Notes: a model not told the origin generated them from the sequence alone. DNA of 64,000 bases from Macrostomum lignano (GCA_002269645.1 NIVC01003116.1:54500-118499); one strand, 5' to 3'. Positions 1 to 62,870 are shown, numbered from the stretch's first letter. Made by a program: numbers and translations.

Positions 1-5658
<5,658 letters not shown>

Positions 5659-6109
5659 GTCTGGCAGCTGGCTGGAGCGAGCGAATTGATTGCAACTGAA
5701 CAAAATGTTTTAATAGCAAACTGGCAAAAGTAATTTAATTTCCATTTTAAAACGGGACTCCATAAAACACGCCCCGCACCGCCCCGAACGCTACACATTA
5801 TAACATTTTTTGTCAATGCAGTATTTGATTGCAAAGAAAAGTATTTGTTGTAAGAGTAATGGAATAAATAAATTCAATTATCATTCTAAATAATAGCATT
5901 ATTATTTTACTAATATTACTATTAATATCGCTTATTATTCACCGAATTGTTTATTTCATAGTGAAAAAACTAAATTCGATACAAACTTGAAGCTTAACAG
6001 AGAACTAACTAACTTTGAAATGTTTCAGTTATAGCCAAATTTGTTATAATGTGTAGCGGTTCGGGGCAGCGCGGGGCGTGTTTTAGGGAGACCCTTTTAA
6101 AACAGCTGC

Positions 6110-7714: not shown

Positions 7715-8920
7715 ATTTATTTCATTAACTATAGACTCTCTAAAGGCATCCTTGGAAAGCCTTGCAAGTGTTGCCAATGTAGGCTAATGATATAGTGTTC
7801 CACTCTTCTATCATAGCAGCCTTCAAGAAATCAATATTGCTGTGGCAGATTGCGGACAGCATAGGCCTTGCCCTTAATGTACACCCACACATGCTTGGGC
7901 GCAACCTTTGGATTCACTCGGCCGTTTCTATTGGCAACATACACATGTAAGTCGCTATTGGACGGAATAGTAGTCACGTGACTGCTCTCAGCCAATAGCG
8001 ACTTACATGTGTGTGTTGCCAATAGAAACGGCCGGGTGATTCCCAAAGTTGCGCATGTATGCACCCACACACTGTAATCAAGTGGCAATAGATCTGGCAA
8101 CAATGGCAGCTAGTAAAACTTTGGCTAGAAGTTCATGTTCTACTAATCTGCTCTAGCCATTCTTGTATAACCTTTGATGCATATGCAGGTATTCTATCCT
8201 GTTGAAACACATAATTTCTATCTAGGAAGTTGGCATCAATCCACGGCTTGATTTTGCTAGCAAACATTTATGTACTTTGCTCTACTCAGTTGGTATCTAA
8301 TAGGAAACCATACCAGTGGGCAGATGCAGCCATTTGACACTATGACACCAAGCATCATTACACTTAAAGGGTATTTGGTTGTTGAGATAAACCTGACTGA
8401 CCCTGACTTTGGAACATTCTCTTCAAGCTTGATGAATCTGTCATTGCACAGTTTCAAGCAGGATCTATGTCAAAGCTCTTCTTGTTGCTGAAAATGATGA
8501 TATGTCTAACAGGGGCTAATTTCAAATTGTTTAGAAGTAGGCTTGCTCTTTCTTAGGTTCTGCTGCATTATGTCAACTAGCAGAGGCCTCTCTTGCACTG
8601 CGAGGGACTTGCCACCAAGCTTTTTCATGTTTCTCAAGTTGGTCAACTTGTGGACATTGAATTCTTGTCTTAGACTCACCACTAAATGCCTTGGATTCTA
8701 AAAAATGGCATCTTGAAACTCAGAATTGCTTACTATTACTGGTCAGCTAGTCTTAGGCTTGTCTTTTAAAGCATCTTCAACTCCTTCATTGACTATTCAC
8801 TTAAATTGATATTGTATACTATTCTTTTAGTACAGTTTACTATTGTCATGACATCCTTGGGTTTAATATCTGTACATAGCAAGGTGGCATTGGCAATCTG
8901 GTGCCTTTTTACATTTATCT
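7715..8920 (-). mobile_element. Degenerate Tc1/mariner transposase (maT/DD37D-like), with stops and frameshifts
   Basis: Minus-strand translation gives KRHQIA.. (N-terminal HTH region), IIIFSNKKSFDIDP (FSDEK motif), KYPLSVMMLGVIVSNG, NYVFQQD..PAYASKVIQEWL, LPDLLPLDYSVW (SPDLNPLD motif) and NIDFLKAAMIEEW. Terminal inverted repeats not identified; the subfamily call is from motif resemblance. Confidence 0.85.
7890..8061. mobile_element. 172-bp foldback MITE, hAT-type, nested in the mariner transposase
   Basis: 8-bp direct repeat CACCCACA at 7882-7889 and 8062-8069; ends CA...TG; ~65-bp inverted arms (GCGCAACC..GTCGCTATTGG / CCAATAGCGAC..GTTGCGC). Removing the element plus one copy of the duplication restores the frame DYSVWVYIKGK. 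Confidence 0.85.
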
Positions 8921-11900
8921 TACAATAAAATGGGCAGATTGATCTGAAATGCTAGCCAAAACCTTAGATTATATTGCTCTATAGCTGGCTAAATGGGCTA
9001 GCTGGTAGGCCCTAACATGTATGGTTTTCTATTTATATGCATTTTAAGATCACTGAAAAGACTTTTGCAACACCTAGTACAAAGAATTAAACCTGTTAAA
9101 CTAATGTTTTGTCATAGCTATAAGAGGTCTATAGCTATAAGTTCCTATGGCAAATATGGTAAAATAGGTGCCTATGGTAGCTACGGATACGCCTATGGTA
9201 GCTAGCTAGCTGCTCTTATGGCTACAGCCTAGTTGCTGTCATATTCTGTAGATTCCCATAGCTATAGTTATTTTATTAATTTTAAAAATTAAAAAAATAA
9301 CTAGAAACAGGTAGAGTAAAACAAAGATACTTCAGTAAACTATATTATCAACTTAGAAACTTAGAGAATATACATAATATTAATAAATAACAATAAAACA
9401 CTAGCAAACTCTACTTTTTATTAATATAAAAAAGTTAAGCATTAGTACTTTCAATAGTAATTAAGTATTATTGCTCTGTAAAAAGATAAAATGTATTCTT
9501 ACAAAGGAAATTGAGTGTTTCTTATATTTTTTTAATTAATTTGCAGTTGTTTAAGCACCAGGTTTGGTTATCTTCTTGATTCAAAATATTTAGTTTTCTA
9601 GACTTTTTGTTAAAACTACGATTATGGCTATGGGAATTTTGGGAAATATGATAATATTGGGGTCCCTATGGCACAAAATACGGAGAATTGGAATAGGGGC
9701 CTAAGCCATAGTTTTGCTTACAGCTATAGCTAAAGTACATGGACCCTCCTTACAACCTTACAGGCTATGGCGGAATACTATGTTAAACCTATGCATGGGC
9801 CTATAGTATACTAGGCCTATGCAAACCAATTTTTAATCAACAAATTTACTAGGCCTATCTTTAAGAACAAAAACACTAACTACACTACAATAAGATAAAG
9901 ATAGAGCCTATATAGAATATAATACTTATAAAAATAATTAAAGGCAATTTCCTTCCTAGTTTACTGCATTAAATTATTTTTCAGTTTTTTCAAACTTTCA
10001 GGTTCAGCCCATTTGCCAACTCTGCAACTGGCTGGAAGGCCCAACTATTTGCTTGTTGGCCACGTATGGGCTCCTGAGGAATTCTTGGGTTTGTGAACAA
10101 TGCTCTGAGACTCTAGCTTTGCAGCTACAGCCACGACCACGAGGTGGACTGTGGAGTCCAGTTTGTTGACAACTCATCAAGAGTTGAGAGTCAAGCAAGA
10201 GTCCACATCTTGTGGGCCATTAGCAGCACAAGCCAATACTTGCCATACATAAGTCTTGGTGTATTATATCGAATCGTATACATTCATAATTTTCACATAT
10301 TATTATTATAAATTTAATATTAATATGTGAATGTGAGGAGAGGCGGTGGTGGTAGATAGTTTAATTCGCAGAAAAAAGAACAATAGTAGTAGTAGTAAGT
10401 TTGGCTCAGGCAAGAAGCCTGTTTGGCCAGTATATGCCAGTGTATTTAATATTAATATTATTTCGATAGAATGGGATCTGTGCGGCGAGTTTTACAATAA
10501 TATAGTATTTGAAAGGGCGCCAATTTTTTTTTTCTACGAAACTTCAAAAATCTTCAACGGCAAACAAAGCAAAAAGTATTTAAGTAAGGAATTAAAAGAC
10601 AAGTATGGTGTCACTTGAATTCGTAGGTGATAAAAATAAGTTTATATGTATTAATCAGACAAAAAAATCAGATGAAAGGATTGCTGGCAATTATTAGGCA
10701 TTAAATATGAAGGGTATTTTTGAAGCAAATATGTAAGAAAGAAATAACCAAAAATAGAGTGCTTAAATAAAAATAAGGCGCGATTAGAAAAAGAAAATTT
10801 TTACATAAATAAACGCGTAATATGGGATAGATTGCACCGGTATTGTTTACTCGAAGAGGGGTAGGGACTTAATAGCAAGAGATGCATAGTAGCAAGAGGG
10901 AATAGCAAGTAAAGTATCAAGGTAACCAGGGATTCAATTGGTGTAAGACGGTCAGCAACAGCGTGGTACACATGGTGTTCTCTATAATTTTCATGTCGGT
11001 TAAGGAGGGAGATTTGCTATGAGTTTATAGATCTTCTCAATAGCTAGCAAATCTTTTTTATTTTTGTTTTCGTTTGTAGCAGTAGAAGACAACGACTTGA
11101 AAATTAAAATTGTTTTGGAAAGAAAAACAAAACAACTCTGAAAATAAGCTTATTTTAAGCCCACAAGAGTATAAAAAGCTGACCTTTATTGTGAAATTAA
11201 TTCTTTGTTTTGCGAGTACCAATTATTTAGTCAATACATTGAATACCTTAATTAGGCTCGTGACGTCTACACGTTGTACTAACTCCATGTGACAATGTAG
11301 GTCATTGAATAAAGCTGTTGATAGATGAGCCTGAAGCTGTGAAGCAAAGTCCAAAATTAAGTTTAATCCTGTCTGCCTCTCTAAGTTTCGAAATTTTGAT
11401 CCTCCTGTATGCCAGAAATTAAAGTTAAACGATGCTTCTATTCACAAAGCATAGGATGAAAGATTTTATAATAAGTTATAAGTTAAACAGAAGCATTTTA
11501 ATGTATTTATAAAGCCAATGATTATTTTCTTGGCTTTTACCCCCCCCCCCCCTAGCTTAAACTTAAACCCTCCATTGGCTCCAACTGTGCCTTTCTACAC
11601 TAGGCCGCCTACCTTCCCTGTCTGCCCCAATTTTAATTTTTATAGCCTTTTTTGGAATTCTAGCTCAAAGCTATCACTGCTATGTACATTTTACTATTAG
11701 TAGACTGGTCTACATTATGTACATTGTTGCTGAACCAATTAACAAGTTGTTTATACCTAAAAGATTGGACTCTAAACTTATAAAAATAAATTTAGTTGCC
11801 TTTATTTAAAAAAATATTTTATGTATTCTTCTTTGCTATTAGACTAATAAACTAAAAGTATAAAGCTATTGTATACTAACTAAGTATATATGCCTGAGTG

Positions 11901-12143: not shown

Positions 12144-15100
12144 ATGGAGACCCAGTTGTTGCAACCAAATTCAGATCCACTATTGGCTCAATTTACATTA
12201 GATAGTATCAAAGCAAGGCATTTTGCTAATTCTGAAAAGATGCCTAGTACAAAGACAGTTGGAGCAATACCTTCTAACTATGATAGCAGAAAAACACAAG
12301 TATATGTGGTGCCAAGCTCAAAGTAAGTTTTGTCTACATTTTCTATTTTTATAATTGACTTAAACACTTTTTGGTCATTGACACCCAACTTATACTAACT
12401 ATACTAAAACTATAGTATATCTAACTATACTATACTGACCAATCACAGTGATTGGTCAGTGACAGGTGATTCAGTCACATAATTGGCCATTGACACCTGA
12501 CTTAGTCACATCACATGATTAGTCAGTGATAGCCAATTCAGTCATATGATTGGCCACTGACACCTGACTCAGTCACCTGATTAGCCCTTGAGAGTGACTC
12601 AGTCACCGAATTGCTCATTGACACCCAACTCAGTCACATGATTGGCCCCTAACACCTGACACAGTCACCTAATTGCTCACTGACACCCGACTCAGTCACC
12701 TGATTAGCTACTGACACCCAACTCAGTCACATGATTGGCCCCTGACACCCAACTCAGTCACATGATTGGCCCCTGTCACCCAACTCAGTCACCTGATTGG
12801 CCCCTGACAATGCCCAAATCGCAGGTCGGACACGCCAGCCCTCATCGTGTGGAGCCGGCCGCTGACCTCGCGCAAGCGCCTGTCGTCCAGCAGCTGCACC
12901 CTGACGCCCGAGGAGCTGCTGGGTGTCAGCGCGGCCAAACGGGCACTCGGCGGCATCAGCCCCTGGTCAGATGGTCGCGAGAAATTCGACCTAAGCTTCG
13001 ACGAATGGGCCGCCTCCTTGGAAGCCCACGATGCGCCTATTGTCGAATTGGCGCCGTCAGCTGGCGCCGGCGCTCTTGACAATGCCACTGGCGCTGTCGA
13101 CAAACTGCAGCGTCATCCTTCATCGTCGGCAGTTATTGATCAGCATCAGTTCGGCGGCGTTGCCCGTCGGCAGAGTCTGCAAGCTCGTCGTACACCAGCG
13201 GCAGCGACAGTTCAACAACAGCGTCGGGGTGTTCAGCAGTCAATCGCCACCGCAGTGTCTGTGGGCGTTGTCGGAGCCGGCGGGCCAGAATCGGTTTCTT
13301 CGACAGCTCAGATTCCGTTGACTGGCGACATCACCGCCGCATCGACTGAACCTTCGTCAGTAACTGTTTCTCGCAACCGACTGCAGAGTGTGTACTCGCG
13401 GTACTCGGAGAAACAGGTGACAGATTGTGTCTTTTTATCAATCTCTAGATAGTCTCACTTATTAATCTCTAGACAATCTTTCTTATCAATCTCTACACAA
13501 TCTCACTTGTTTCAGGCTTACAAACGCCTGCTGAAAGTGCTCAGACGACATCCATATTTGGACAAGGACTCCATCAAATATAACAAACTTCTGTTGCTAG
13601 AAAATAGCCTCAATATATGTCACAAGTTCCAGGTATGACTCTCTACCATTTGTCTAATTATAATCTCGATTTTTATTAAATTATTGAAACGAGCATTTCA
13701 AAGCATAATAAAAATTTACCAGGCCAGTCTGCGATCTACCGGTAGCGGCAGTCTTCAGCGTCCTGAAACTCTGGAAGATCTGGCCGTTGAAGAGAGCCAC
13801 CTGGTGTCCGCGATTCGCGAGCACGTCACTGAGATTCCGTATTTGGCCGCGCTGGCGCCAAAGTCTGACCGGCGAGCCGCCAAAATTGAAGCCCGAGTCA
13901 GGCGAATGGAGAAGCAGGTGTGTTTGTGTGTGTGTGTTTTACCTGCGCTAAGCTGGCTGGTTAATCTTTATACTGTACATCCATTTGCTCGTATTATAAG
14001 CTTCTACATCCTGTAGTGTAGCTTCTACATCCTGTAGTGTAGCTTCTACATCCCATAGTGCAGCTTCTACATTGTCTAATGTAGCTTCTACATTGTCTAA
14101 TGTAGCTTCTACATTGTCTAATGTAGCTTCTACATTGTCTAATGTAGCTTCTACATTGTCTAATGTAGCTTCTACATTGTCTAATGTAGCTTCTACATTG
14201 TCTAATGTAGCTTCTACATCCTGTAGTGTAGCTTCTACATCCCATAGTGCAGCTTCTACATTGTCTAATGTAGCTTCTACATTGTCTAATGTAGCTTCTA
14301 CATCCTGTAGTGTAGCTTCTACATTGTCTAATGTAGCTTCTACATCCTGTAGTGTAGCTTCTACATCCTGTAGTGTAGCTTCTACATCCCATAGTGCAGC
14401 TTCTACATTGTCTAATGTAGCTTCTACATTGTCTAATGTAGCTTCTACATTGTCTAATGTAGCTTCTACATTGTCTAATGTAGCTTCTACATTGTCTAAT
14501 GTAGCTTCTACATTGTCTAATGTAGCTTCTACATCCTGTAGTGTAGCTTCTACATCCCATAGTGCAGCTTCTACATTGTCTAATGTAGCTTCTACATTGT
14601 CTAATGTAGCTTCTACATCCTGTAGTGTAGCTTCTACATTGTCTAATGTAGCTTCTACATTGTCTAATGTAGCTTCTACATTGTCTAATGTAGCTTCTAC
14701 ATTGTCTAATGTAGCTTCTACATTGTCTAATGTAGCTTCTACATCCTGTAGTGTAGCTTCTACATCCTGTAGTGTAGCTTCTACATCCCATAGTGCAGCT
14801 TCTACATTGTCTAATGTAGCTTCTACATTGTCTAATGTAGCTTCTACATCCTGTAGTGTAGCTTCTACATCCTGTAGTGTAGCTTCTACATCCCATAGTG
14901 CAGCTTCTACATTGTCTAATGTAGCTTCTACATTGTCTAATGTAGCTTCTGACAGTAGCTTCTACATCCTGTAGTGTAGCTTATACATCCTGTAGTGTAG
15001 CTTCTACATCCTGTAGTGTAGCTTCTACATCCTGTAGTGTAGCTTCTACATCCCATAGTGCAGCTTCTACATTGTCTAATGTAGCTTCTACATTGTCTAA

Positions 15101-32869: not shown

Positions 32870-34070
32870 ATCCAAGGCCAGCCAGGTTGAGCGGGTTGCA
32901 CTGCTTTCGTCCGGTCAGAGCATTGATGGTGGACCAGGCCACGCGACATTTGGCGTCGGGTCCAGCGGCGGGCGGTGACGGCCTGCTGGATGGCGTCGTC
33001 AACAGCAGCGGCCTGAATTGCCGCTGCAGGTACACGTAGACAGCTACCAGATCCTCCTCTACCTCGCGAGTTGGCCACCTACCCAGATGGAGCCTCTCCG
33101 CTCTTCCTTCGCTTACCGAATCGCAGGGTCGTCCTGCCTGCAGATCGGTTGCATCAGCGGGATCCTGCCTTACTCCGCCGCGGCTTTAACCGCAGCTCAC
33201 TTACCTCCATGTACTCGGTGTGCGCCCGCACCTGTCGACAAGCGCACTGACGTAGGCATTAGCGAAATGGCGATGGGCCTGGGCCAACATGTACGGACCT
33301 ACATGTACGCAAAACCTTGTTCAGGTCTCCGAGGACGACCACTGTGTCACACGCTGCGCCGTCTCCTCCACCTGTGCCGTCTCCTCCATCTGCGCCAAGA
33401 GCTGCTCGAAGAAAACTTGAGCCTGGTCAGGTCGGGTGGCAGGAGGCGCGTACGCGCAGAACAGGCAAAAAAGCGTTACGGCCGCGAAGCCAGACGTCGA
33501 CCCGAAGCAGCCGATCAGACATGGAGATGCAGCAACAGCTCTGCTGCAGCCTCGGTCCGATCAGCGCTCCAACTCCTGCACGGCCTCGTTGGTCCGCCGA
33601 CGTGTAACAGAGGGTCCAACCGGCGCTCAGGTCCTCACAATGAATTCCCGGGTCGGCCCTGATGGCCACCTCATGCAACGAGATGACGTCGCATCTGAGG
33701 TCGGGCGCTAGCTGCGCCAGCAGCCCTTTCCACCAGGTGGCCTTTAGAGTGCAGCAGTTCAGCTTCCCGACCCGAAGCGTGGCCCTGTGGTACGGCTGTG
33801 TGGCTCAATGACAATAAGCCTCACGGTCTACGGTGCTACCCGGAAGATCCGATTGGCCAAAGATGGCAGCAGCTCGACGGGCGGAACCTCGTTGCCGATC
33901 TCGCCGGTTTCCTTCACGCCGCCGTTCAACTCGCCGGCACTCGCTTCCCTGCCCTCGCTTGGTCTTTCCGCTGTTGGCCGCCGCAGCAGTTAAGCATAAC
34001 TCTCCGATTACACCACTGGGAGGTCGCGGCGAATATCTGCACCGAGGTGCAAATCTAATATAAGTCTGCA
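32870..34070 (-). mobile_element. Degenerate non-LTR retrotransposon (LINE) fragment: AP endonuclease plus part of the linker
   Basis: Minus strand: LRVGKLNCCTL..CDVISLHEVAIRADPG, GRAGVGALIG, SDRLLRVD, LFCAYAP, VVVLGDLN (APE motifs), then AWSTINALTGRK. Frameshifted and internally deleted; no RT domain. Clade not assigned; left and right limits approximate. Confidence 0.82.
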
Positions 34071-34616: not shown

Positions 34617-35564
34617 ATGCTTAACGGCATGCCACAGAACTTGCTGCCGATCACGATGACTCTGTCAACTGTTGGCGTCCTGCTGAACTGCCTGCTGCTG
34701 CTGTTCGCCCTACGTCACCGGATCGCCTCTCGCTCTGCCACGCTGCTAGTCCGAAGTCAGGCGGCCATCGACGCGCTCGTACTGGCTAGCAGCGTTGCCT
34801 TCGTTCAAATAAAATTGATTCCTAAACCAAGCGATGCAACGTACCTCCATGTCCATACTGGCTGGTACTTGTACTGCATCTTCGGTGATAGAAGTCAAAT
34901 CATAGCTTGGATGCTGGTAGATTGCAGCGTTTTCAACCTCGTGGCGTTCTCTATCGAACGGTGCTTGTGCATCTGCTGCAACTTCTGGTGGCGACTGCAC
35001 AAGAAGGCGGCAATGAGGATTTTATTTGCGGGAATCTTTCTCGGCACGTTTGTCGGCTACGTCCCCCTGGCGCTGGTTACCAACTGGCCGCACGAGGTTT
35101 TGAATGGGAATCAATCCTCAGTCGGCTGTCTAACTAACGGTAATCAGAACTTTGAACAACTATTCTCAACACTTGGCGTATTGTGCTCAGTGGTAACTGG
35201 GCTGGTCCCGATGCTGAGCATGCTGATTTGCTATGCGGCTATCATGGTCAGACTGCGCAGATCGTCAACGGTTTCATCATCAGCGTCGATTAGCAACTCG
35301 GATGCCGCATCGAAACGGTTCACCATCATTGTTGGCGTCACTGTTGCCGTCTTTATTGTGTTCAACTTTCCCGGCATTGTGTACTATTTGCTTTGGAATC
35401 TGTCCATCGTCACGGATGACTTGATACCTGCAGACATATCAAGCCTGGCTTTTCCGCTGCTCTCTGCAGCGAACTCATTGGTAAATCCGTTAATTTACTT
35501 GGCGTTTCATCGAAAATTCCTCAAGTTTCTGTTTTGCCGAATCAAGAAAGCTGAGAGGACATGA
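34617..35564 (+). CDS. Intronless class A (rhodopsin-like) orphan GPCR, 315 aa
   Basis: Seven hydrophobic segments; TM1 GVLLN, TM2 AAID, TM3 FSIERC (D/ERY variant), ECL2 Cys, TM6 FIVFNFP, TM7 NSLVNPLIY. Confidence 0.93.
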   Translation: MLNGMPQNLLPITMTLSTVGVLLNCLLLLFALRHRIASRSATLLVRSQAAIDALVLASSVAFVQIKLIPKPSDATYLHVHTGWYLYCIFGDRSQIIAWMLVDCSVFNLVAFSIERCLCICCNFWWRLHKKAAMRILFAGIFLGTFVGYVPLALVTNWPHEVLNGNQSSVGCLTNGNQNFEQLFSTLGVLCSVVTGLVPMLSMLICYAAIMVRLRRSSTVSSSASISNSDAASKRFTIIVGVTVAVFIVFNFPGIVYYLLWNLSIVTDDLIPADISSLAFPLLSAANSLVNPLIYLAFHRKFLKFLFCRIKKAERT

Positions 35565-39801: not shown

Positions 39802-41716
39802 TTTAGCACCAAGGGGCTTTAGCACCAAGGGGCTTTAGCACCAAGGGGCTTTAGCACCAAGGGGCTTTAGCACCAAGGGGCTTTAGCACCAAGGGGCTTT
39901 AGCACCAAGGGGCTTTAGCACCAAGGGGCTTTAGCACCAAGGGGGCTTTAGCACCAAGGGGGCTTTAGCACCAAGGGGCTTTAGCACCAAGGGGCTTTAG
40001 CACCAAGGGGCTTTAGCACCAAGGGGCGCCAGCACCAAGGGGCTTTAGCACCAAGGGGCTTTAGCACCAAGGGGCTTTAGCACCAAGGGGCTTTAGCACC
40101 AAGGGGCTTTAGCACCAAGGGCTTTAGCACCAAGGGGCTTTAGCACCAAGGGGCTTTAGCACCAAGGGGCTTTAGCACCAAGGGGCTTTAGCACCAAGGG
40201 GCTTTAGCACCAAGGGGCTTTAGCACCAAGGGGCTTTAGCACCAAGGGGCTTTAGCACCAAGGGGCTTTAGCACCAAGGGGCTTTAGCACCAAGGGGCTT
40301 TAGCACCAAGGGGCTTTAGCACCAAGGGGCTTTAGCACCAAGGGGCTTTAGCACCAAGGGGCTTTAGCACCAAGGGCTTTAGCACCAAGGGGCTTTAGCA
40401 CCAAGGGGCTTTAGCACCAAGGGGCTTTAGCACCAAGGGGCTTTAGCACCAAGGGGCTTTAGCACCAAGGGGCTTTAGCACCAAGGGGCTTTAGCACCAA
40501 GGGGCTTTAGCACCAAGGGGCTTTAGCACCAAGGGGCTTTAGCACCAAGGGGCTTTAGCACCAAGGGGCTTTAGCACCAAGGGGCTTTAGCACCAAGGGG
40601 CTTTAGCACCAAGGGGCTTTAGCACCAAGGGGCTTTAGCACCAAGGGGCTTTAGCACCAAGGGGCTTTAGCACCAAGGGGCTTTAGCACCAAGGGCTTTA
40701 GCACCAAGGGGCTTTAGCACCAAGGGGCTTTAGCACCAAGGGGCTTTAGCACCAAGGGCTTAAGCACCAAGGGGCTTTAGCACCAAGGGGCTTTAGCACC
40801 AAGGGGCTTTAGCACCAAGGGGCTTAAGCACCAAGGGGCTTTAGCACCAAGGGGCTTAAGCACCAAGGGGCTTAAGCACCAAGGGGCTTAAGCACCAAGG
40901 GGCTTAAGCACCAAGGGGCTTTAGCACCAAGGGGCTTTAGCACCAAGGGGCTTTAGCACCAAGGGGCTTTAGCACCAAGGGGCTTTAGCACCAAGGGGCT
41001 TTAGCACCAAGGGGCTTTAGCACCAAGGGGCTTTAGCACCAAGGGGCTTTAGCACCAAGGGGCTTTAGCACCAAGGGGCTTTAGCACCAAGGGGCTTTAG
41101 CACCAAGGGGCTTTAGCACCAAGGGGCTTTAGCACCAAGGGGCTTTAGCACCAAGGGGCTTTAGCACCAAGGGGCTTTAGCACCAAGGGGCTTTAGCACC
41201 AAGGGGCTTTAGCACCAAGGGGCGCCAACACCAAGGGGCTTTAGCACCAAGGGGCTTTAGCACCAAGGGGCTTTAGCACCAAGGGGCTTTAGCACCAAGG
41301 GGCTTTAGCACCAAGGGGCTTTAGCACCAAGGGGCGCCAGCACCAAGGGGCTTTAGCACCAAGGGGCTTTAGCACCAAGGGGCTTTAGCACCAAGGGGCT
41401 TTAGCACCAAGGGGCTTTAGCACCAAGGGGCTTTAGCACCAAGGGGCTTTAGCACCAAGGGGCTTTAGCACCAAGGGGCTTTAGCACCAAGGGGCTTTAG
41501 CACCAAGGGGCTTTAGCACCAAGGGGCTTTAGCACCAAGGGGCTTTAGCACCAAGGGGCTTTAGCACCAAGGGGCTTTAGCACCAAGGGGCTTTAGCACC
41601 AAGGGGCTTTAGCACCAAGGGGCTTTAGCACCAAGGGGCTTTAGCACCAAGGGGCTTTAGCACCAAGGGGCTTTAGCACCAAGGGGCTTTAGCACCAAGG
41701 GGCGCCAGCACCAAGG
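39802..41716 (+). repeat. 16-bp satellite (GGGGCTTTAGCACCAA)n, ~120 copies
   Basis: Highly homogeneous, with occasional GGGGCGCCAGCACCAA and GGGGCTTAAGCACCAA variants. Confidence 0.98.
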
Positions 41717-42249
41717 GTCGCCAGCCCATGGGAGGAGGGCGCGGCCCCTTTGTGCCCCCTCTGTTTACTCCTCTGTTTCTGAAGATGGTAGACTAAAAAG
41801 CCTATCTCAATACGAATAATCTGCACTAGATAGCAGCATTCAGCAAGTCAGTAAAAGCCTTAATGCGAGGCAGCTGGTTCTGTGCATCGGCAAATAAGAT
41901 ATGGATTTCTTGGACTTAAACACAAACAATTGATGAGCTGGAAACGCCTCCCCCCACATGATGGGATGTGGTTTATTTGATAAAGTTTTCATATTGACAC
42001 ATTGTAATAAAACACACAAAATACTGTTTGACCTTGAATTTTCTGTCCAACAGAATCCTGAATATGATGTCTTACAATTATAATATTCACTATTCTAAAG
42101 TAGTTGGTCTTTAGTGTCTAACATTGGGAGTATTATGTCGAACTCTTATCTTACTTAGGAACACAGTATTTAACTGTGAGGAACGTGGAATGTAACATTT
42201 TAAGAGAATATTATATTGTATATTACTAGTATCCCCACTGTATATATTA

Positions 42250-46613: not shown

Positions 46614-47759
46614 ATGTCGTCATTGGTACCGAAGCCCAGCGCTTCGAGTCACGGCAGTACGCCGAGAACTTCGATCAACACGGACAGCATCTTGTCCCAG
46701 ATCGAGATGGAGCAGCACTACACGGTGAAGCAGGAGCTCGGCCGAGGCACCTACGGCAAGTGCGTATTAGTCACCTGCAAGGAGACTGGCAAGCAGCTCG
46801 TATTGAAACTGTTGGACAAGCGCACAACCCGGATGAAAGATTTTCTGCACGAGCTCAACACCAGCATCTTCCTGTCGGCGCATCCGAATGTCATCGATGC
46901 CTACAGCGTGGCATTCGAGACCGCAGATTATTATTCGTTCGCGCTTGAGTTCGCCCCACTCGGCGACCTGTTCGAGTTCATTCAGCCGGGACGCGGACTG
47001 CCCGAGGCCACCGTCAAGCTGGTGATCGGCCAGATGGCCTCAGCGCTAGAGTTCATGCACTCGCAGAACATCTGCCATCGGGACTTGAAGCCGGAGAACA
47101 TTGCCGTGTTCGAGCCGGACCTCAGCATAGTTAAGCTAGTGGACTTCGGCATGGCACGCAGCGCGGGAACTCTCTGCAAAAAAGTCGGCCCGTCGATTCC
47201 GTACACGCCGCCTGAGATTGCTCAAGCGGCCCGGAGCGAGACCTACCAGGTGCACACTGGCACGGACGTTTGGTCGTTTGGAGTGTTGATCTTCTGCGCT
47301 CTGACAGGCAGTTTCCCCTGGCAAGTGGCCAAAGAGACGGACAATAGCTACTACGAGTTCGTCCAGTGGCAGAAACGGAAGACGCTGAGAACGCCGACAA
47401 ACTTCCGCGAGTTCGCGCCCAGTCTGCAGAAGCTGCTGCGGAAACTGTTGGAGCCGAAGCTGGCCAGGAGGGCGCCAATTACGAAGGTGCGCAAGTATCT
47501 CAATGACGACTGGACGGTACTGATCGGCGGCAGGCAACCGCGTCTCATCGCAGTCGCTAACGAAGTCTCAGCAGGCGGTGACGTCATCTGCGATCTGGAC
47601 AACGAGGAGCTGGAACAGGCTCGCCTGGCCCGGATGCTGGAAAAGTTTGGCGTCAAAACCAAGGTGAACAAGCGAACCAAGGAGCAGCGCGTGTCCGACT
47701 GGGTGCACCACTCGTCACCGTCGGCCGATCTGCCGAGCGAGGAGAGCGACAACGATTAA
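46614..47759 (+). CDS. SBK1: Intronless Ser/Thr kinase, SBK1 (SH3 domain-binding kinase)-like, 381 aa
   Basis: ELGRGTYGK, LVLK, FLHE, AFETADYYSFALEFAPLGDLF, HRDLKPEN, DFG, PYTPPE, DVWSFGVLIFCALTGSFPW; closely follows the SBK family pattern. Confidence 0.9.
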   Translation: MSSLVPKPSASSHGSTPRTSINTDSILSQIEMEQHYTVKQELGRGTYGKCVLVTCKETGKQLVLKLLDKRTTRMKDFLHELNTSIFLSAHPNVIDAYSVAFETADYYSFALEFAPLGDLFEFIQPGRGLPEATVKLVIGQMASALEFMHSQNICHRDLKPENIAVFEPDLSIVKLVDFGMARSAGTLCKKVGPSIPYTPPEIAQAARSETYQVHTGTDVWSFGVLIFCALTGSFPWQVAKETDNSYYEFVQWQKRKTLRTPTNFREFAPSLQKLLRKLLEPKLARRAPITKVRKYLNDDWTVLIGGRQPRLIAVANEVSAGGDVICDLDNEELEQARLARMLEKFGVKTKVNKRTKEQRVSDWVHHSSPSADLPSEESDND

Positions 47760-55065: not shown

Positions 55066-55798
55066 ATGCATCTGACTGTGCTGTCTGCGATCTGGTCCGC
55101 AGTTTTCTTGCTGACGATCGGCCCGGTGATGACTGACCAGAACTGCCCAGCTCCGTTCCAGCTGCACTCAGCCACACAGCTGTGCCTGCTCATCGAGTCC
55201 AGCGAGAGCTACAGCTGGTGCTCCGCCAACCGAAGGTGCGATGAGCTGGGCGGAGAACTTATCAGCTCGCCGGAGTCCATCGTTGCGCTGCTTGCCTCGA
55301 ATCTGGCTGACAACATCACGGTTGACATGTGGACTGGACTCACCGATCTGGGCTACGAGGTTGGAAAGAACAGGACAGGCTGGCAGAGAGTCAACGGCGA
55401 TGGCGAGTTTCCTAGAAATGACTCGCTCTGGTATGGTAGTGAGCCGAACGACGGCTTTCAGCAGAACTGCATTCGTTTTATCGGACACGTACCAAGTAAG
55501 GGATTCGGCGACAGAGAATGCAGCCATTTGCTCGGCTTCGTCTGCCAGTTCATGGAGCCGCCTGCCGCCACCAAATCGGCCGGCTACTGGACTCCAGCTG
55601 AGTTCAAGAGAACCCGGAACGACACGTACTACTGCCACGAGGAGCTGCACCGGTGGACTCGCTGAAAGCCTGCCTGATCAGAGCCTCCCTCTGTACAACA
55701 GCTGGCTGGCCGCCTGCCGCCTGCTGCAGTTCGCCGACGCTCCGGTCGACTCGGAAATCGAGAGCAGCCCGAACTGGGTCAAGCTGGTCAGGGGCTGA
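55066..55798 (+). CDS. Secreted C-type lectin domain protein with frameshifted PAN/apple-like tail (possible pseudogene or assembly error)
   Basis: ATG 55066, hydrophobic signal peptide, CTLD motifs CP..F..CL..S WC.AN..C, WTGL, W..SEPND, NC..D.EC...FVC. Frame 1 stops at 55665; the PAN-like text continues in other frames (VDSLKACLIR, then YNSWLAACRLL..NWVKLVRG* ending 55798). Confidence 0.8.
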
Positions 55799-56386
55799 GT
55801 GGGTCAGGCTAGTCAGGGGCTGAGTGGGTCAGGCTGGTCAGGGGCTGAGTGGGTCAAGCTGGTCAGGGGCTGAGTGGGTCAGGCTGGTCAGGGGCTGAGT
55901 GGGTCAAGCTGGTCAGGGGCTGAGTGGGTCAAGCTGGTCAGGGGCTGAGTGGGTCAGGCTGGTCAGGGCTGAGTGGGTCAAGCTGGTCAGGGTGTGAGTG
56001 GGTCAAGCTGGTCAGGGGCTGAGTGGGTCAAGCTGGTCAGGGGCTGAGTGGGTCAGGCTGGTCAGGGCTGAGTGGGTCAAGCTGGTCAGGGTGTGAGTGG
56101 GTCAAGCTGGTCAGGGGCTGAGTGGGTCAAGCTGGTCAGGGGCTGAGTGGGTCAGGCTGGTCAGGGCTGAGTGGGTCAAGCTGGTCAGGGGCTGAGTGGG
56201 TCAGGCTGGTCAGGGGCTGAGTGGGTCAAGCTGGTCAGGGGCTGAGTGGGTCAGGCTGGTCAGGGGCTGAGTGGGTCAAGCTGGTCAGGGGCTGAGTGGG
56301 TCAGGCTGGTCAGGGGCTGAGTGGGTCAAGCTGGTCAGGGCTGAGTGGGTCAAGCTGGTTAGGGCTGAGTGGGTCAAGCTGGTCAG
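55775..56386 (+). repeat. 25-bp minisatellite whose first unit is the lectin gene's last codons and stop, ~24 copies
   Basis: Unit TGGGTCAAGCTGGTCAGGGGCTGAG = W V K L V R G stop. Confidence 0.95.
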
Positions 56387-57239
56387 AATCTGAGAGTTGG
56401 TTCGATATTTTACTTTTTTAGATACGAGGTGTTAAAGGAGACACTTTTTGACAAAAATGAAAATTAGAAAGAATCTTACTTAACCGATCTTCAGAAAAGT
56501 ACACGCTTTTTATTGTAAACCTTGTTAAACTATTTTGAATCAAGTGCAGACAATGTATTTCATTTGCTGATCTTAAGTTCAATTGCTATAATATGCCGGA
56601 AAAACTACAAACGCCGCTAATAAACTTTGAAACTAAACCGAAGAAGTTTTAATAAAACTGCTCTATCAACTATATTTATCGTTGACCTTGACTAATTGCT
56701 CAAGGACACCAAGATGCTCCTACATTCATTTCTTTCATTTTCTTTTTTGAGTTTGAAGTCAATTTGAAAAAAAAGGAAGTTGAGAGAAGAGCGGTAAACT
56801 TCAAAGGACGACTTTGAAAAGTGCCGCGCTTTTGCAAGTCAATAGATCAAAAATCGATGGACTACCCTCTCTCTGACGTTGCATCAGTACACTGACTATT
56901 CTAGTGCGGTGAACTTCAATGAACTCACCTGACTTGACTGTTCAATTATCCTACAGCTAGGTTTTTGAAATTCATAATATTCTTCTATTATTAGTGTTGC
57001 AAGCAGGAAATTAACCAAACAATGGTTATTGATTACCGAAGGGCTGAATGTTTTCAGTTTACAAACAGCCGATGAGTGAATTTTGCGTCTAATTTAATAA
57101 AATTGATCACAATTTCTGTTCTATTTTGTTAGAAGGCAGTTCTTCTCAGCGCGATCTAGTTTTAAAGTTCAACAGTCTCCATGCCTTCCAGTTTAAAATC
57201 TCGAATCTCGCAACATGCGTACGCTTGTACATGCAGACT

Positions 57240-60060: not shown

Positions 60061-60881
60061 AAAGGGCAGAGACAGGGAGATAAGGGAGGCAGTGGAAAAG
60101 GGTCCAAGTACGGTATAAAGACAAGAGCGGCAGTGAAAGCAGGCATGATATATACTCGTAGAAAAGCAAGCAATGCTCAGAAAGCGAAGAATCCATTTAG
60201 GATAGAAGCAAAAAAGCAACAGGAATGTTTTCACAATACTGACATTGCTCTAACCTGCCCTGATGCTCGAATCATAGTGAGCAATGCAAAAAAACTGCTG
60301 ATGCCCGATCGAATGCGGGAGCCCCTATTTCTCCGGCTGAAGTCACATGGGAAATTCGATGAAAAAATCAGTTACTCGACAGTGCAGGGGCACTGAGGGG
60401 CGGTTCACGTCGTCGCAGAAATTTCCCGAATGCACTAATAAGTCTTCTGCTTGTTTAAGGTAAAAAAGCAAAAACATCCTGCTGCCTTTCTCAAATATTA
60501 ATTCGTTGCTCGTTTGAATTAATTTTTATAAAAATCGGCTACGGATGTGATTAATCATTCGACAATCCACTTCTACAGGTTCATCTTTCAATCAGGAAAT
60601 TGCCTAGCACCCAAGAAGGAAAATTCTCGAATCCTTAAAAACTGTTTTAATTTCCAAATTGTTGATTTAATGACAGTTTTTTATAAGTACCTGGGATTGG
60701 CTGGATAGAATACGCTCGTACGCTCGCGATTTTGAAGGAATCAAATGAAGGCGGTTTTATAGGTTTTATAGATTTGGTTGACAGTGATGTAAGAGCTTTT
60801 GTTGGAAAAGATGAAGCAGAGGATTCATAACAATCCGGCGTAGGCACGAGTTTTAATTGGTGGGTGACATTTGAGGGACCA

Positions 60882-62870
60882 GGGGCTTTAGCACCAAGGG
60901 GCTTTAGCACCAAGGGGCTTTAGCACCAAGGGGGCTTTAGCACCAAGGGGCGCCAGCACCAAGGGGCTTTAGCACCAAGGGGCTTTAGCACCAAGGGGCG
61001 CCAGCACCAAGGGGCTTTAGCACCAAGGGGCTTTAGCACCAAGGGGCTTTAGCACCAAGGGGCTTTAGCACCAAGGGGCTTTAGCACCAAGGGGCTTTAG
61101 CACCAAGGGGCTTTAGCACCAAGGGGCTTTAGCACCAAGGGGCTTTAGCACCAAGGGGCTTTAGCACCAAGGGGCTTTAGCACCAAGGGGCTTTAGCACC
61201 AAGGGGCGCCAGCACCAAGGGCGCCAGCACCAAGGGGCGCCAGCACCAAGGGGCTTTAGCACCAAGGGGCTTTAGCACCAAGGGGCTTTAGCACCAAGGG
61301 GCTTTAGCACCAAGGGGCTTTAGCACCAAGGGGCTTTAGCACCAAGGGGCTTTAGCACCAAGGGCGCTTTAGCACCAAGGGGCTTTAGCACCAAGGGGGC
61401 TTTAGCACCAAGGGGCTTTAGCACCAAGGGGCTTTAGCACCAAGGGGCTTTAGCACCAAGGGGCTTTAGCACCAAGGGGCTTTAGCACCAAGGGGGCTTT
61501 AGCACCAAGGGGCGCCAGCACCAAGGGGCTTTAGCACCAAGGGGCTTTAGCACCAAGGGGCTTTAGCACCAAGGGGCTTTAGCACCAAGGGGCTTTAGCA
61601 CCAAGGGGCTTTAGCACCAAGGGGCTTTAGCACCAAGGGCTTTAGCACCAAGGGGCTTTAGCACCAAGGGGCTTTAGCACCAAGGGGCTTTAGCACCAAG
61701 GGGCTTTAGCACCAAGGGGCTTTAGCACCAAGGGGCGCCAGCACCAAGGGGCTTTAGCACCAAGGGGCTTTAGCACCAAGGGGCTTTAGCACCAAGGGGC
61801 TTTAGCACCAAGGGGCTTTAGCACCAAGGGCTTTAGCACCAAGGGGCTTTAGCACCAAGGGGCTTTAGCACCAAGGGGCTTTAGCACCAAGGGGCTTTAG
61901 CACCAAGGGGCTTTAGCACCAAGGGGCTTTAGCACCAAGGGGCTTTAGCACCAAGGGGCTTTAGCACCAAGGGGCTTTAGCACCAAGGGCTTTAGCACCA
62001 AGGGGCTTTAGCACCAAGGGGCTTTAGCACCAAGGGCTTTAGCACCAAGGGGCTTTAGCACCAAGGGGCTTTAGCACCAAGGGGCTTTAGCACCAAGGGG
62101 CTTTAGCACCAAGGGGCTTTAGCACCAAGGGGCTTTAGCACCAAGGGGCTTTAGCACCAAGGGGCTTTAGCACCAAGGGGCTTTAGCACCAAGGGGCTTT
62201 AGCACCAAGGGGCTTTAGCACCAAGGGGCTTTAGCACCAAGGGGCTTTAGCACCAAGGGGCTTTAGCACCAAGGGGCTTTAGCACCAAGGGGCTTTAGCA
62301 CCAAGGGGCTTTAGCACCAAGGGGCTTTAGCACCAAGGGGCGCCAGCACCAAGGGGCTTTAGCACCAAGGGGCGCCAGCACCAAGGGGCGCCAGCACCAA
62401 GGGGCGCCAGCACCAAGGGCGCCAGCACCAAGGGGCGCCAGCACCAAGGGGCGCCAGCACCAAGGGGCGCCAGCACCAAGGGGCTTTAGAACCAAGGGGC
62501 TTTAGCACCAAGGGGCGCCAGCACCAAGGGGCGCCAGCACCAAGGGGCGCCAGCACCAAGGGGCGCCAGCACCAAGGGGCTTTAGCACCAAGGGGCTTTA
62601 GCACCAAGGGCTTTAGCACCAAGGGGCTTTAGCACCAAGGGGCTTTAGCACCAAGGGCTTTAGCACCAAGGGGCTTTAGCACCAAGGGGCGCCAGCACCA
62701 AGGGGCGCCAGCACCAAGGGGCCAGCACCAAGGGGCGCCAGCACCAAGGGGCGCCAGCACCAAGGGCGCCAGCACCAAGGGGCGCCAGCACCAAGGGGCG
62801 CCAACACCAAGGGGCCAGCACCAAGGGGCTTTAGCATCAAGGGGCGCCAGCACCAAGGGGCTTTAGCTCA
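60882..62870 (+). repeat. 16-bp satellite (GGGGCTTTAGCACCAA)n, second large array
   Basis: Same unit and orientation as 39802-41716; GGGGCGCCAGCACCAA variants dominate 62340-62860. Confidence 0.98.

Follow-up and report, generated by a model that had tools for sequence, protein, structure and literature searches.

A minisatellite in Macrostomum lignano probably born in place from the last seven codons and stop of a lectin gene

Within 64,000 nucleotides (nt) of Macrostomum lignano DNA (GCA_002269645.1, NIVC01003116.1:54500-118499; hereafter the window, to whose first letter all positions refer), sequence of a C-type lectin gene runs directly into a tandem array of 25 units. The array is likely to be a minisatellite that was born in place from the last seven codons of this gene, its TGA stop and one following base. 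Its first unit is homologous to the conserved C-terminus of a protein family, relatives of the gene carry the same codons only once, and in the copy assembled here the reading frame is broken upstream of the array. The principal features, with frames numbered by start position modulo 3 (mod3), are:

55066-55665, plus strand: lectin open reading frame (ORF) as assembled, 199 amino acids (aa), frame 1 (mod3=1), closed by an in-frame premature TGA at 55663-55665
55691-55798, plus strand: conserved second half of the PAN-like C-terminal domain, frame 2 (mod3=2), LYNSWLAACRLLQFADAPVDSEIESSPNWVKLVRG followed by TGA (55796-55798)
55775-56394, plus strand: the array, 25 units in 620 nt, delimited by Tandem Repeats Finder (TRF), consensus matching and a manual parse
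55775-55799, plus strand: unit 1, the proposed seed, TGG GTC AAG CTG GTC AGG GGC TGA G, which reads W V K L V R G and a stop, with one further nucleotide
56370-56394, plus strand: last unit, TGGGTCAAGCTGGTCAGAATCTGAG, with AGAATC instead of AGGGGC, reading W V K L V R I and stop

The relatives of this gene are distant. With the 199-aa lectin ORF as query, a word-indexed search for homologs returned nothing at E <= 0.001, an alignment of the tails run against the same index yielded one extra protein, exact look-up of the lectin ORF and of a neighboring kinase ORF in a gene-position index gave no match, and tblastn found no lectin paralog within the window. An exhaustive HMMER search, for which the query was a protein stitched from frame 1 up to 55653 and frame 2 onward, recovered 185 relatives at E <= 0.001. 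In eight of them the alignment stops no more than one to four residues short of the query end. These eight tail homologs, from Macrostomum lignano or marine metagenomes, consist of a lectin domain followed by a C-terminal domain that may be called PAN-like only, because the PAN_1 scores of two of them, P0160 and P0123 (21.2 and 19.1 bits; E 2.6e-4 and 1.2e-3), lie just under the cut-off of 21.4 and the stitched protein of the window itself has no hit to Pfam PAN_1. The family C-terminus follows the pattern ...W-V/K/T-K/R-F/Y-x3-5-stop. Directly before the stop, the homologs read ...LYNSKLRTCRLLQFTDAQVELEIETSADWVKFNVY (P0120), ...CRLLLFTDAQAEAEIETSADWVKFGLH (P0122, from Macrostomum), ...CRMIDFADASVGDEIENNPNWKRFVKIY (P0123), ...NPNWTKFVKKLY (P0160), ...HGWVKFVME (P0158) and ...QQHWVKYVSVP (P0250); ...ETSADWVKFNVY and ...NNPNWKRFVKIY are likewise C-termini read among the eight.

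The 35-aa tail alone shares 66% identity with P0120 (E 6e-13) and 53% with P0123 (E 7e-12). When the homologs are aligned by tblastn with the raw DNA of the window, they match frame 1 from 55096 to 55647 and frame 2 from 55691 to 55783-55792; the homology of the tail is therefore independent of the stitching. Six columns are invariant in the alignment of the C-terminal domain (C15, C28, N37, C43, D50 and W63, in the numbering of the window row), and W63 corresponds to the TGG at the start of the repeat unit. The distance from the invariant Asn to this Trp is 26 codons in the window and in three homolog loci (L001-L003). The stop follows the Trp after 7 codons in L001, L004 and the window alike, and after 8-9 in the remaining loci. 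The DNA of L001 is identical to the unit over TGGGTCAAG, with TGA at the same position. Two Macrostomum lignano proteins (UniRef A0A1I8JSG6 and A0A1I8HX01), both embedded in fused gene models, and the marine-metagenome relatives share with the window copy the two-domain layout, the invariant Cys/Asn/Cys/Asp/Trp and a C-terminal W-x-K/R-aromatic or Leu-x3-5-stop. Unlike them, the window copy lacks 7-10 codons of the PAN-like domain and is frame-shifted, and it alone has its terminal 25 nt amplified.

The state before amplification can be approached through five homolog loci (L001-L005; the DNA of P0122 is not among them). In all five the terminal codons are present as a single copy, followed by unique or low-complexity sequence, and no array derived from the terminal 25-mer was found at any of them. 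Although these relatives are distant, they carry the seed once and at the same position, which indicates that the gene did not capture a repeat but that its last 25 nt were amplified. The preliminary description of this locus, made from the sequence alone, had proposed such in-place growth from the end of a gene, and the Trp and stop at their family positions, together with the single-copy state of the homolog loci, bear it out. It had also named paralogs ending in a different sequence as evidence to the contrary; the homologs instead share the terminal motif, at the same distance from the invariant Asn. Under in-place birth, the ancestral site would be expected to read as a single-copy TGGGTCAAGCTGGTCAG(GGGC or AATC)TGAG directly followed by AGTTGGTTCGATATT.

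Codon usage leads to the same boundary. With a codon table built from the kinase, a receptor and two LSD1-like exons of the window, the coding log-odds are positive in frame 1 from ~55006 to ~55650 and then collapse, and frame 2 takes over with positive values from ~55680 as far as the array. The 24 codons at 55703-55774 score 11.7 bits in frame 2, with a third-position G+C fraction (GC3) of 0.92, where in-frame windows of real genes average 8.8 +/- 5.0 bits; the share that attains this score is 0.09% for off-frame windows, 0.04% for shuffles and 1.1% for G+C-matched non-repeat windows. The three-base periodicity moves its phase by one, third-position G+C being 31/37 in the new phase against 40/72 in the other two phases (Fisher p 0.005). 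Downstream, the G+C fraction is 0.64-0.65 in the tail and array and 0.30 in the next 300 nt. As the drop falls exactly at the array end, the unit marks the place where coding sequence formerly gave way to untranslated region (UTR).

The AT-rich sequence beyond this boundary is presumably the original 3' UTR:

56395-56624, plus strand: AT-rich 3' flank, with the first AATAAA after the gene at 56619-56624

This AATAAA lies 225 nt beyond the array, and neither AATAAA nor ATTAAA occurs between 55601 and 56618. If it is used, the array would be transcribed as part of the 3' UTR.

The array itself is a regular minisatellite, with head-to-tail units of 24-25 base pairs (bp) in 25 copies, within the 10-100 bp that define the class and beyond chance. 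TRF reports it at 55775-56386 with a period of 25, 24.7 copies, 93% matches and a score of 1084, and gives a second, higher-order period of 99 bp with 96% matches. The consensus 25-mer, TGGGTCAAGCTGGTCAGGGGCTGAG, matched with up to 3 mismatches over the whole window, gives 20 matches, every one within 55775-56394, against none in 100 dinucleotide-preserving shuffles; the unit occurs nowhere else in the 64 kilobases (kb). Parsed by hand on a TGGGTCA anchor, the array resolves into 20 units of 25 bp and 5 of 24 bp. The last unit is full-length (25 nt), carries 3 substitutions and abuts the AT-rich flank directly; since it is complete though three bases are changed, the array ends 8 nt past 56386. 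The array of ~24 copies with few variants first described at 55775-56386 is thus real, with 8 unit variants, but it extends to 56394 and holds 25 units. The base 5' of the array is C and the base 3' of it is A; as neither continues the unit, the phase is fixed as TGG...TGAG.

Eleven units are identical to unit 1, and private variants stand at the array edges, in units 2, 23, 24 and 25. The Ile of the last unit (W V K L V R I) agrees with P0123 (...FVKIY, stop), while the Gly of unit 1 and of the consensus agrees with no homolog, so the edge unit may keep an older sequence, though this suggestion is based on a single position. The interior contains longer duplications, identified by exact string comparison:

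55950-56147, plus strand: a pair of identical 99-bp blocks, each made up of four units (units 8-11 and 12-15)
56172-56321, plus strand: three identical 50-bp blocks of two units each (units 17-22)

The array is 64% G+C with a strong G skew (300 G, 48%; 97 C, 16%). Stops interrupt all six of its frames, none of which stays open for more than 40 aa. Single-strand folding of four units gave nothing beyond shuffles on either strand (z -1.0 and +0.5), and no G-quadruplex was predicted in the array when folding was run with and without G-quadruplex energies. A structure-driven origin of the array was accordingly rejected, its folding being no different from that of shuffles.

These observations are consistent with a simple course of events. 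A 25-nt segment, made up of the last seven codons, the TGA and one following base, would have been duplicated in tandem. Since each block brings its own stop, the first copy would end the frame at the ancestral position and later copies would fall into what would be the 3' UTR; the protein would remain unchanged, so that nothing need oppose the growth of the array. A duplication that includes the stop leaves the protein the same whether the damage to the gene came earlier or later. Growth to 25 copies could have proceeded by misaligned replication or unequal exchange, and the identical 99-bp and 50-bp blocks suggest that recent steps copied two to four units at once. The preliminary description had offered the short repeat within the unit as a slippage template; however, the two GGTCA copies lie ~9 nt apart, a spacing that cannot set a 25-bp period, and the self-similarity of the unit reaches at best 11/25 matches (offsets 8-9 and complementary 16-17).

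Published initiation models, as summarized in one source, leave behind either an incomplete terminal unit or flanking direct repeats of 5-10 bp (PMC3389668). The model of Taylor and Breden (2000), based on slipped-strand mispairing at non-contiguous repeats (PMC3389668), shares with this locus the in-place origin and the recognizable single-copy ancestor, but its key signature, the incomplete terminal unit, is lacking here. The model of Haber and Louis (1998) likewise shares the tandem duplication of a short unique segment and its later expansion; of the flanking repeats that it calls for (PMC3389668), no exact one of at least 5 nt is found between the unit start, TGGGTCAAGC, and the 3' flank, AGTTGGTTCG, nor is there an exact direct repeat of at least 5 nt between the unit end and the 5' flank. 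Transposon-derived tandem repeats also begin from a pre-existing functional sequence (PMC3389668), whereas the seed here comprises the C-terminal codons and stop of a host gene, with no element features around.

Several points weigh against birth from the gene's end. The homologs are all distant, with 27-42% identity overall and 47-66% in the tail, so that the comparison reaches the pre-amplification state only through remote relatives. C-terminal conservation is limited to W-V-K and to length, the last four residues (LVRG) being variable. No incomplete terminal unit is present, as the 620 nt are 25 whole units, and the array junctions show no exact repeat of at least 5 nt, although later turnover may have erased one; with neither founding signature present, the first duplication cannot be reconstructed. 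The uniqueness of the unit rests on 64 kb and on viral, prokaryotic-genome and metagenome collections, which hold no exact match to the 25-mer and probably do not include this genome. Copy number and lesion both rest on one assembled sequence, and, given the frame break, unit 1 is probably not translated today.

The frame break lies inside the PAN-like domain. The lectin ORF has a hydrophobic N-terminus resembling a signal peptide, a long-form C-type lectin domain (aa 48-162) and a linker; Pfam Lectin_C matches it over profile positions 2-107 of 107 (E 3.4e-7, 31.4 bits against a cut-off of 22.6), and the number of cysteines in the 199-aa product is even. Its stop at 55663-55665 lies 109 nt upstream of the array. 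The seven codons and TGA of unit 1 stand in frame 2, within an ORF at 55241-55798 that shares DNA with the lectin ORF in a different frame and matches no Pfam profile. No single open frame therefore leads from the start to the family C-terminus in this copy. The statement that the first unit is coding holds by descent, as homology and codon usage make the unit the end of the gene, but it stands in another frame than the lectin ORF; an intact gene is not found here, since those 109 nt separate the lectin stop from the array and the C-terminal domain has to be read in another frame.

The change of frame can be placed within a short interval:

55648-55690, plus strand: lesion interval, passing from frame 1 to frame 2, possibly via frame 0 (mod3=0), with a deficit of 20-29 nt relative to homologs

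The invariant Cys and Asn on either side of it are separated by 84-93 nt (28-31 codons) in the five homolog loci and by 64 nt (21 codons and one base) in the window, and a DNA alignment with L001 across the lesion has a net gap of 23 nt. A frame-path dynamic program places either one shift near 55648 or two near 55648 and 55680, even at a cost of 8-10 bits per shift. On one reading, the path would go through frame 0, where VDSLKACLIRASL would put a Cys at the place where P0120 has a Cys; on another, a single frameshifting deletion would account for the interval. The window copy is probably a young pseudogene or a truncated gene of the lectin domain only, the damage being probably recent because the tail is well conserved and its codon usage intact. 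The break is probably real rather than an assembly error, because the neighboring kinase and receptor ORFs are intact and full length, which indicates good base-level accuracy.

The strongest alternative to this part of the account holds that the gene is intact in the animal and unit 1 is translated today, the break being due to an assembly error, a defective allele or a short intron such as the GT..AG interval at 55653-55701. These 49 nt would connect frame 1 with frame 2, and the well-conserved tail and undecayed codon usage are what an intact gene would show. An intron adds length, however, whereas the interval is 20-29 nt shorter than in the homologs, whose genes are uninterrupted ORFs over this region in their contigs. 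The candidate donors are all weak (CCG|GTGGAC and others) and the interval is ~57% G+C, while the LSD1-like gene has two clear introns that open with consensus donors (CAG|GTGCGAG and AAG|GTGAGT) and become AT-rich at once. Assembly error is countered by the absence of frameshifts from the other ORFs of the window. An intact gene is consequently possible but unlikely; the intron model was rejected outright, many GT..AG intervals having been enumerated among which there was no good donor and the interval being too short.

Much less probable is that the array was kept by selection, as nuclear-receptor-like half sites or as a regulatory element of the 3' UTR. Its 620 nt do contain 25 GGGTCA and 23 TGGTCA, arranged as GGGTCA-n3-TGGTCA, and the preliminary description had likened such half sites to nuclear-receptor elements. 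Both motifs appear instead to follow from inherited codons: GGGTCA is TGG-GTC-A (Trp-Val, then Lys) and TGGTCA is CTG-GTC-A (Leu-Val, then Arg), each before a codon beginning with A, and the TGG-GTC-A string is inherited from the protein family. The array contains no copy of the canonical AGGTCA, and TGGTCA does not conform to RGGTCA; the proposed resemblance is not supported. The lack of notable single-strand structure or predicted G-quadruplex and the damage to the adjacent gene also speak against a selected element.

It is scarcely credible that the gene captured a pre-existing downstream array, its frame running on to the first TGA. Because the period is 25 bp and every unit brings a TGA, a frame that enters the array meets a stop within three units, and for this reason the observation that the gene ends in unit 1 proves nothing by itself. 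Yet unit 1 holds the invariant Trp 26 codons past the invariant Asn, with the stop 7 codons on as in L001 and L004; the identity with L001 over TGGGTCAAG, the single-copy state of the same codons in the homolog loci and a coding signature that runs without a gap up to the array boundary bring repeat capture close to refutation. Equally improbable is a gene that ends at the TGA of 55663, with an unrelated 3'-UTR minisatellite whose first unit resembles codons by chance. The assembled lectin ORF does stop there, with a 199-aa product of even cysteine number, but the 108 nt at 55691-55798, when read in frame 2, show homology with eight relatives over their C-terminal domain and carry coding-level codon usage. 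This explanation is refuted as to the origin of the array, and it still describes the translatable product of this copy, if the lesion is real. Lastly, a dispersed satellite or transposon-borne repeat that landed beside the gene is a most improbable source, even though a 16-bp unit forms arrays at two window loci with unrelated flanks and tandem repeats derived from transposons abound in the human genome (PMC3389668), because the 25-bp unit is confined to one locus in the window, has no exact match in the three collections and is homologous to the gene's own conserved end, and because no terminal inverted repeats bracket the array and its flanks match only themselves in the window.

Birth in place from the gene's end, then, makes the locus an unusually well-anchored minisatellite of a known type, for which an ordinary mechanism suffices and nothing mechanistically new is required. 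Classical vertebrate G-rich minisatellites, or variable number tandem repeats (VNTRs), have units of 10-100 bp and are G+C-rich and strand-asymmetric. The array shares with them the unit size, G+C richness, G/C asymmetry, interspersed variants, block duplications and diverged edges, but differs in having grown from a conserved coding end, a kind of seed that can rarely be identified. The start of a minisatellite is much harder to study than its growth, and the founder is normally unrecognizable (PMC3389668). Here protein homology identifies it, as the unit opens at an invariant Trp codon and includes the stop at its family position, and the array thereby gains a fixed phase, a polarity and an ancestral state, within a region that is more than one-third minisatellite. 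The locus also illustrates how expansion can proceed without touching the protein when the duplication spans the stop codon. For annotation, it shows a lectin ORF cut by a frame break whose true C-terminus was recovered only by codon statistics combined with an exhaustive profile search.

The homologs and their loci offered some observations of their own. P0122, P0125 and P0129, which are Macrostomum lignano proteins or their UniParc neighbors, carry the lectin-plus-PAN-like module in frame within far larger gene models that contain a solute symporter, a guanylate cyclase and a globin-like protein, and the reading of P0125 runs beyond W-T-K-F-I-R into the cyclase sequence. Many transcripts of Macrostomum lignano are polycistronic precursors (PMC5730564), and these large models are probably fused models of polycistronic units or nested genes. 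The 3' flank of P0160 (L003, 502-955) is CT-rich, low-complexity sequence that ends in an ACTC microsatellite, with nothing in it derived from the terminal codons. On the 21-kb metagenome contig of L005, an ORF at 8751-10543 that encodes a reverse transcriptase (RVT_1) follows downstream of the lectin homolog at a distance of ~3 kb; it also has a weak viral-polymerase C-terminal hit.

The surroundings of the gene are rich in repeats. Simple and tandem repeats make up 15% of the Macrostomum lignano genome (PMC5730564), while 36% of the window lies in 29 TRF arrays, of which 22 reach at least 300 bp, and its genes form G+C-rich islands (50-60%) amid an AT-rich, array-filled background:

898-5703, minus strand: exons of an LSD1/KDM1A-like gene (SWIRM and amine oxidase domains)
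34617-35564: rhodopsin-type receptor, full 7tm_1 profile, no frameshift
46614-47759: SBK1-like kinase, covering 99% of its best relative (383 aa) at 60% identity, 7.3 kb upstream of the lectin gene
elsewhere in the window: an exon encoding a TLC domain

It is tempting, though doubtful, to suppose that in this genome arbitrary short stretches of unique sequence are amplified in place by an unusually active process. If so, the present array would be the first with its seed fixed to the base, the 20-29 nt deficit ~90-125 nt upstream and the 25-nt duplication could share one error-prone replication or repair activity, and the 50- and 99-bp blocks could report the polarity and step size of that activity. 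The preliminary description had held the lectin array up as a model for the other private arrays of the window. Two comparisons do not favor this extension. The 16-bp unit TTTAGCACCAAGGGGC forms two ~2-kb arrays, at 39802-41717 and 60881-62867, which lie 19 kb apart with dissimilar flanks, so that some arrays are dispersed rather than private. The introns of the LSD1-like gene are packed with arrays that start 35-60 nt after consensus donors (~985 and ~5113); these arrays have no clear derivation from exons and hence lend the model no support.

Among the smaller features of the window are two G+C-rich ORFs, at 33018-33662 (214 aa) and 12847-13452 (201 aa), which have no significant Pfam match and may be unannotated genes or exons. 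One of the LSD1-like introns also holds a 670-bp GACA microsatellite, at 2743-3414.

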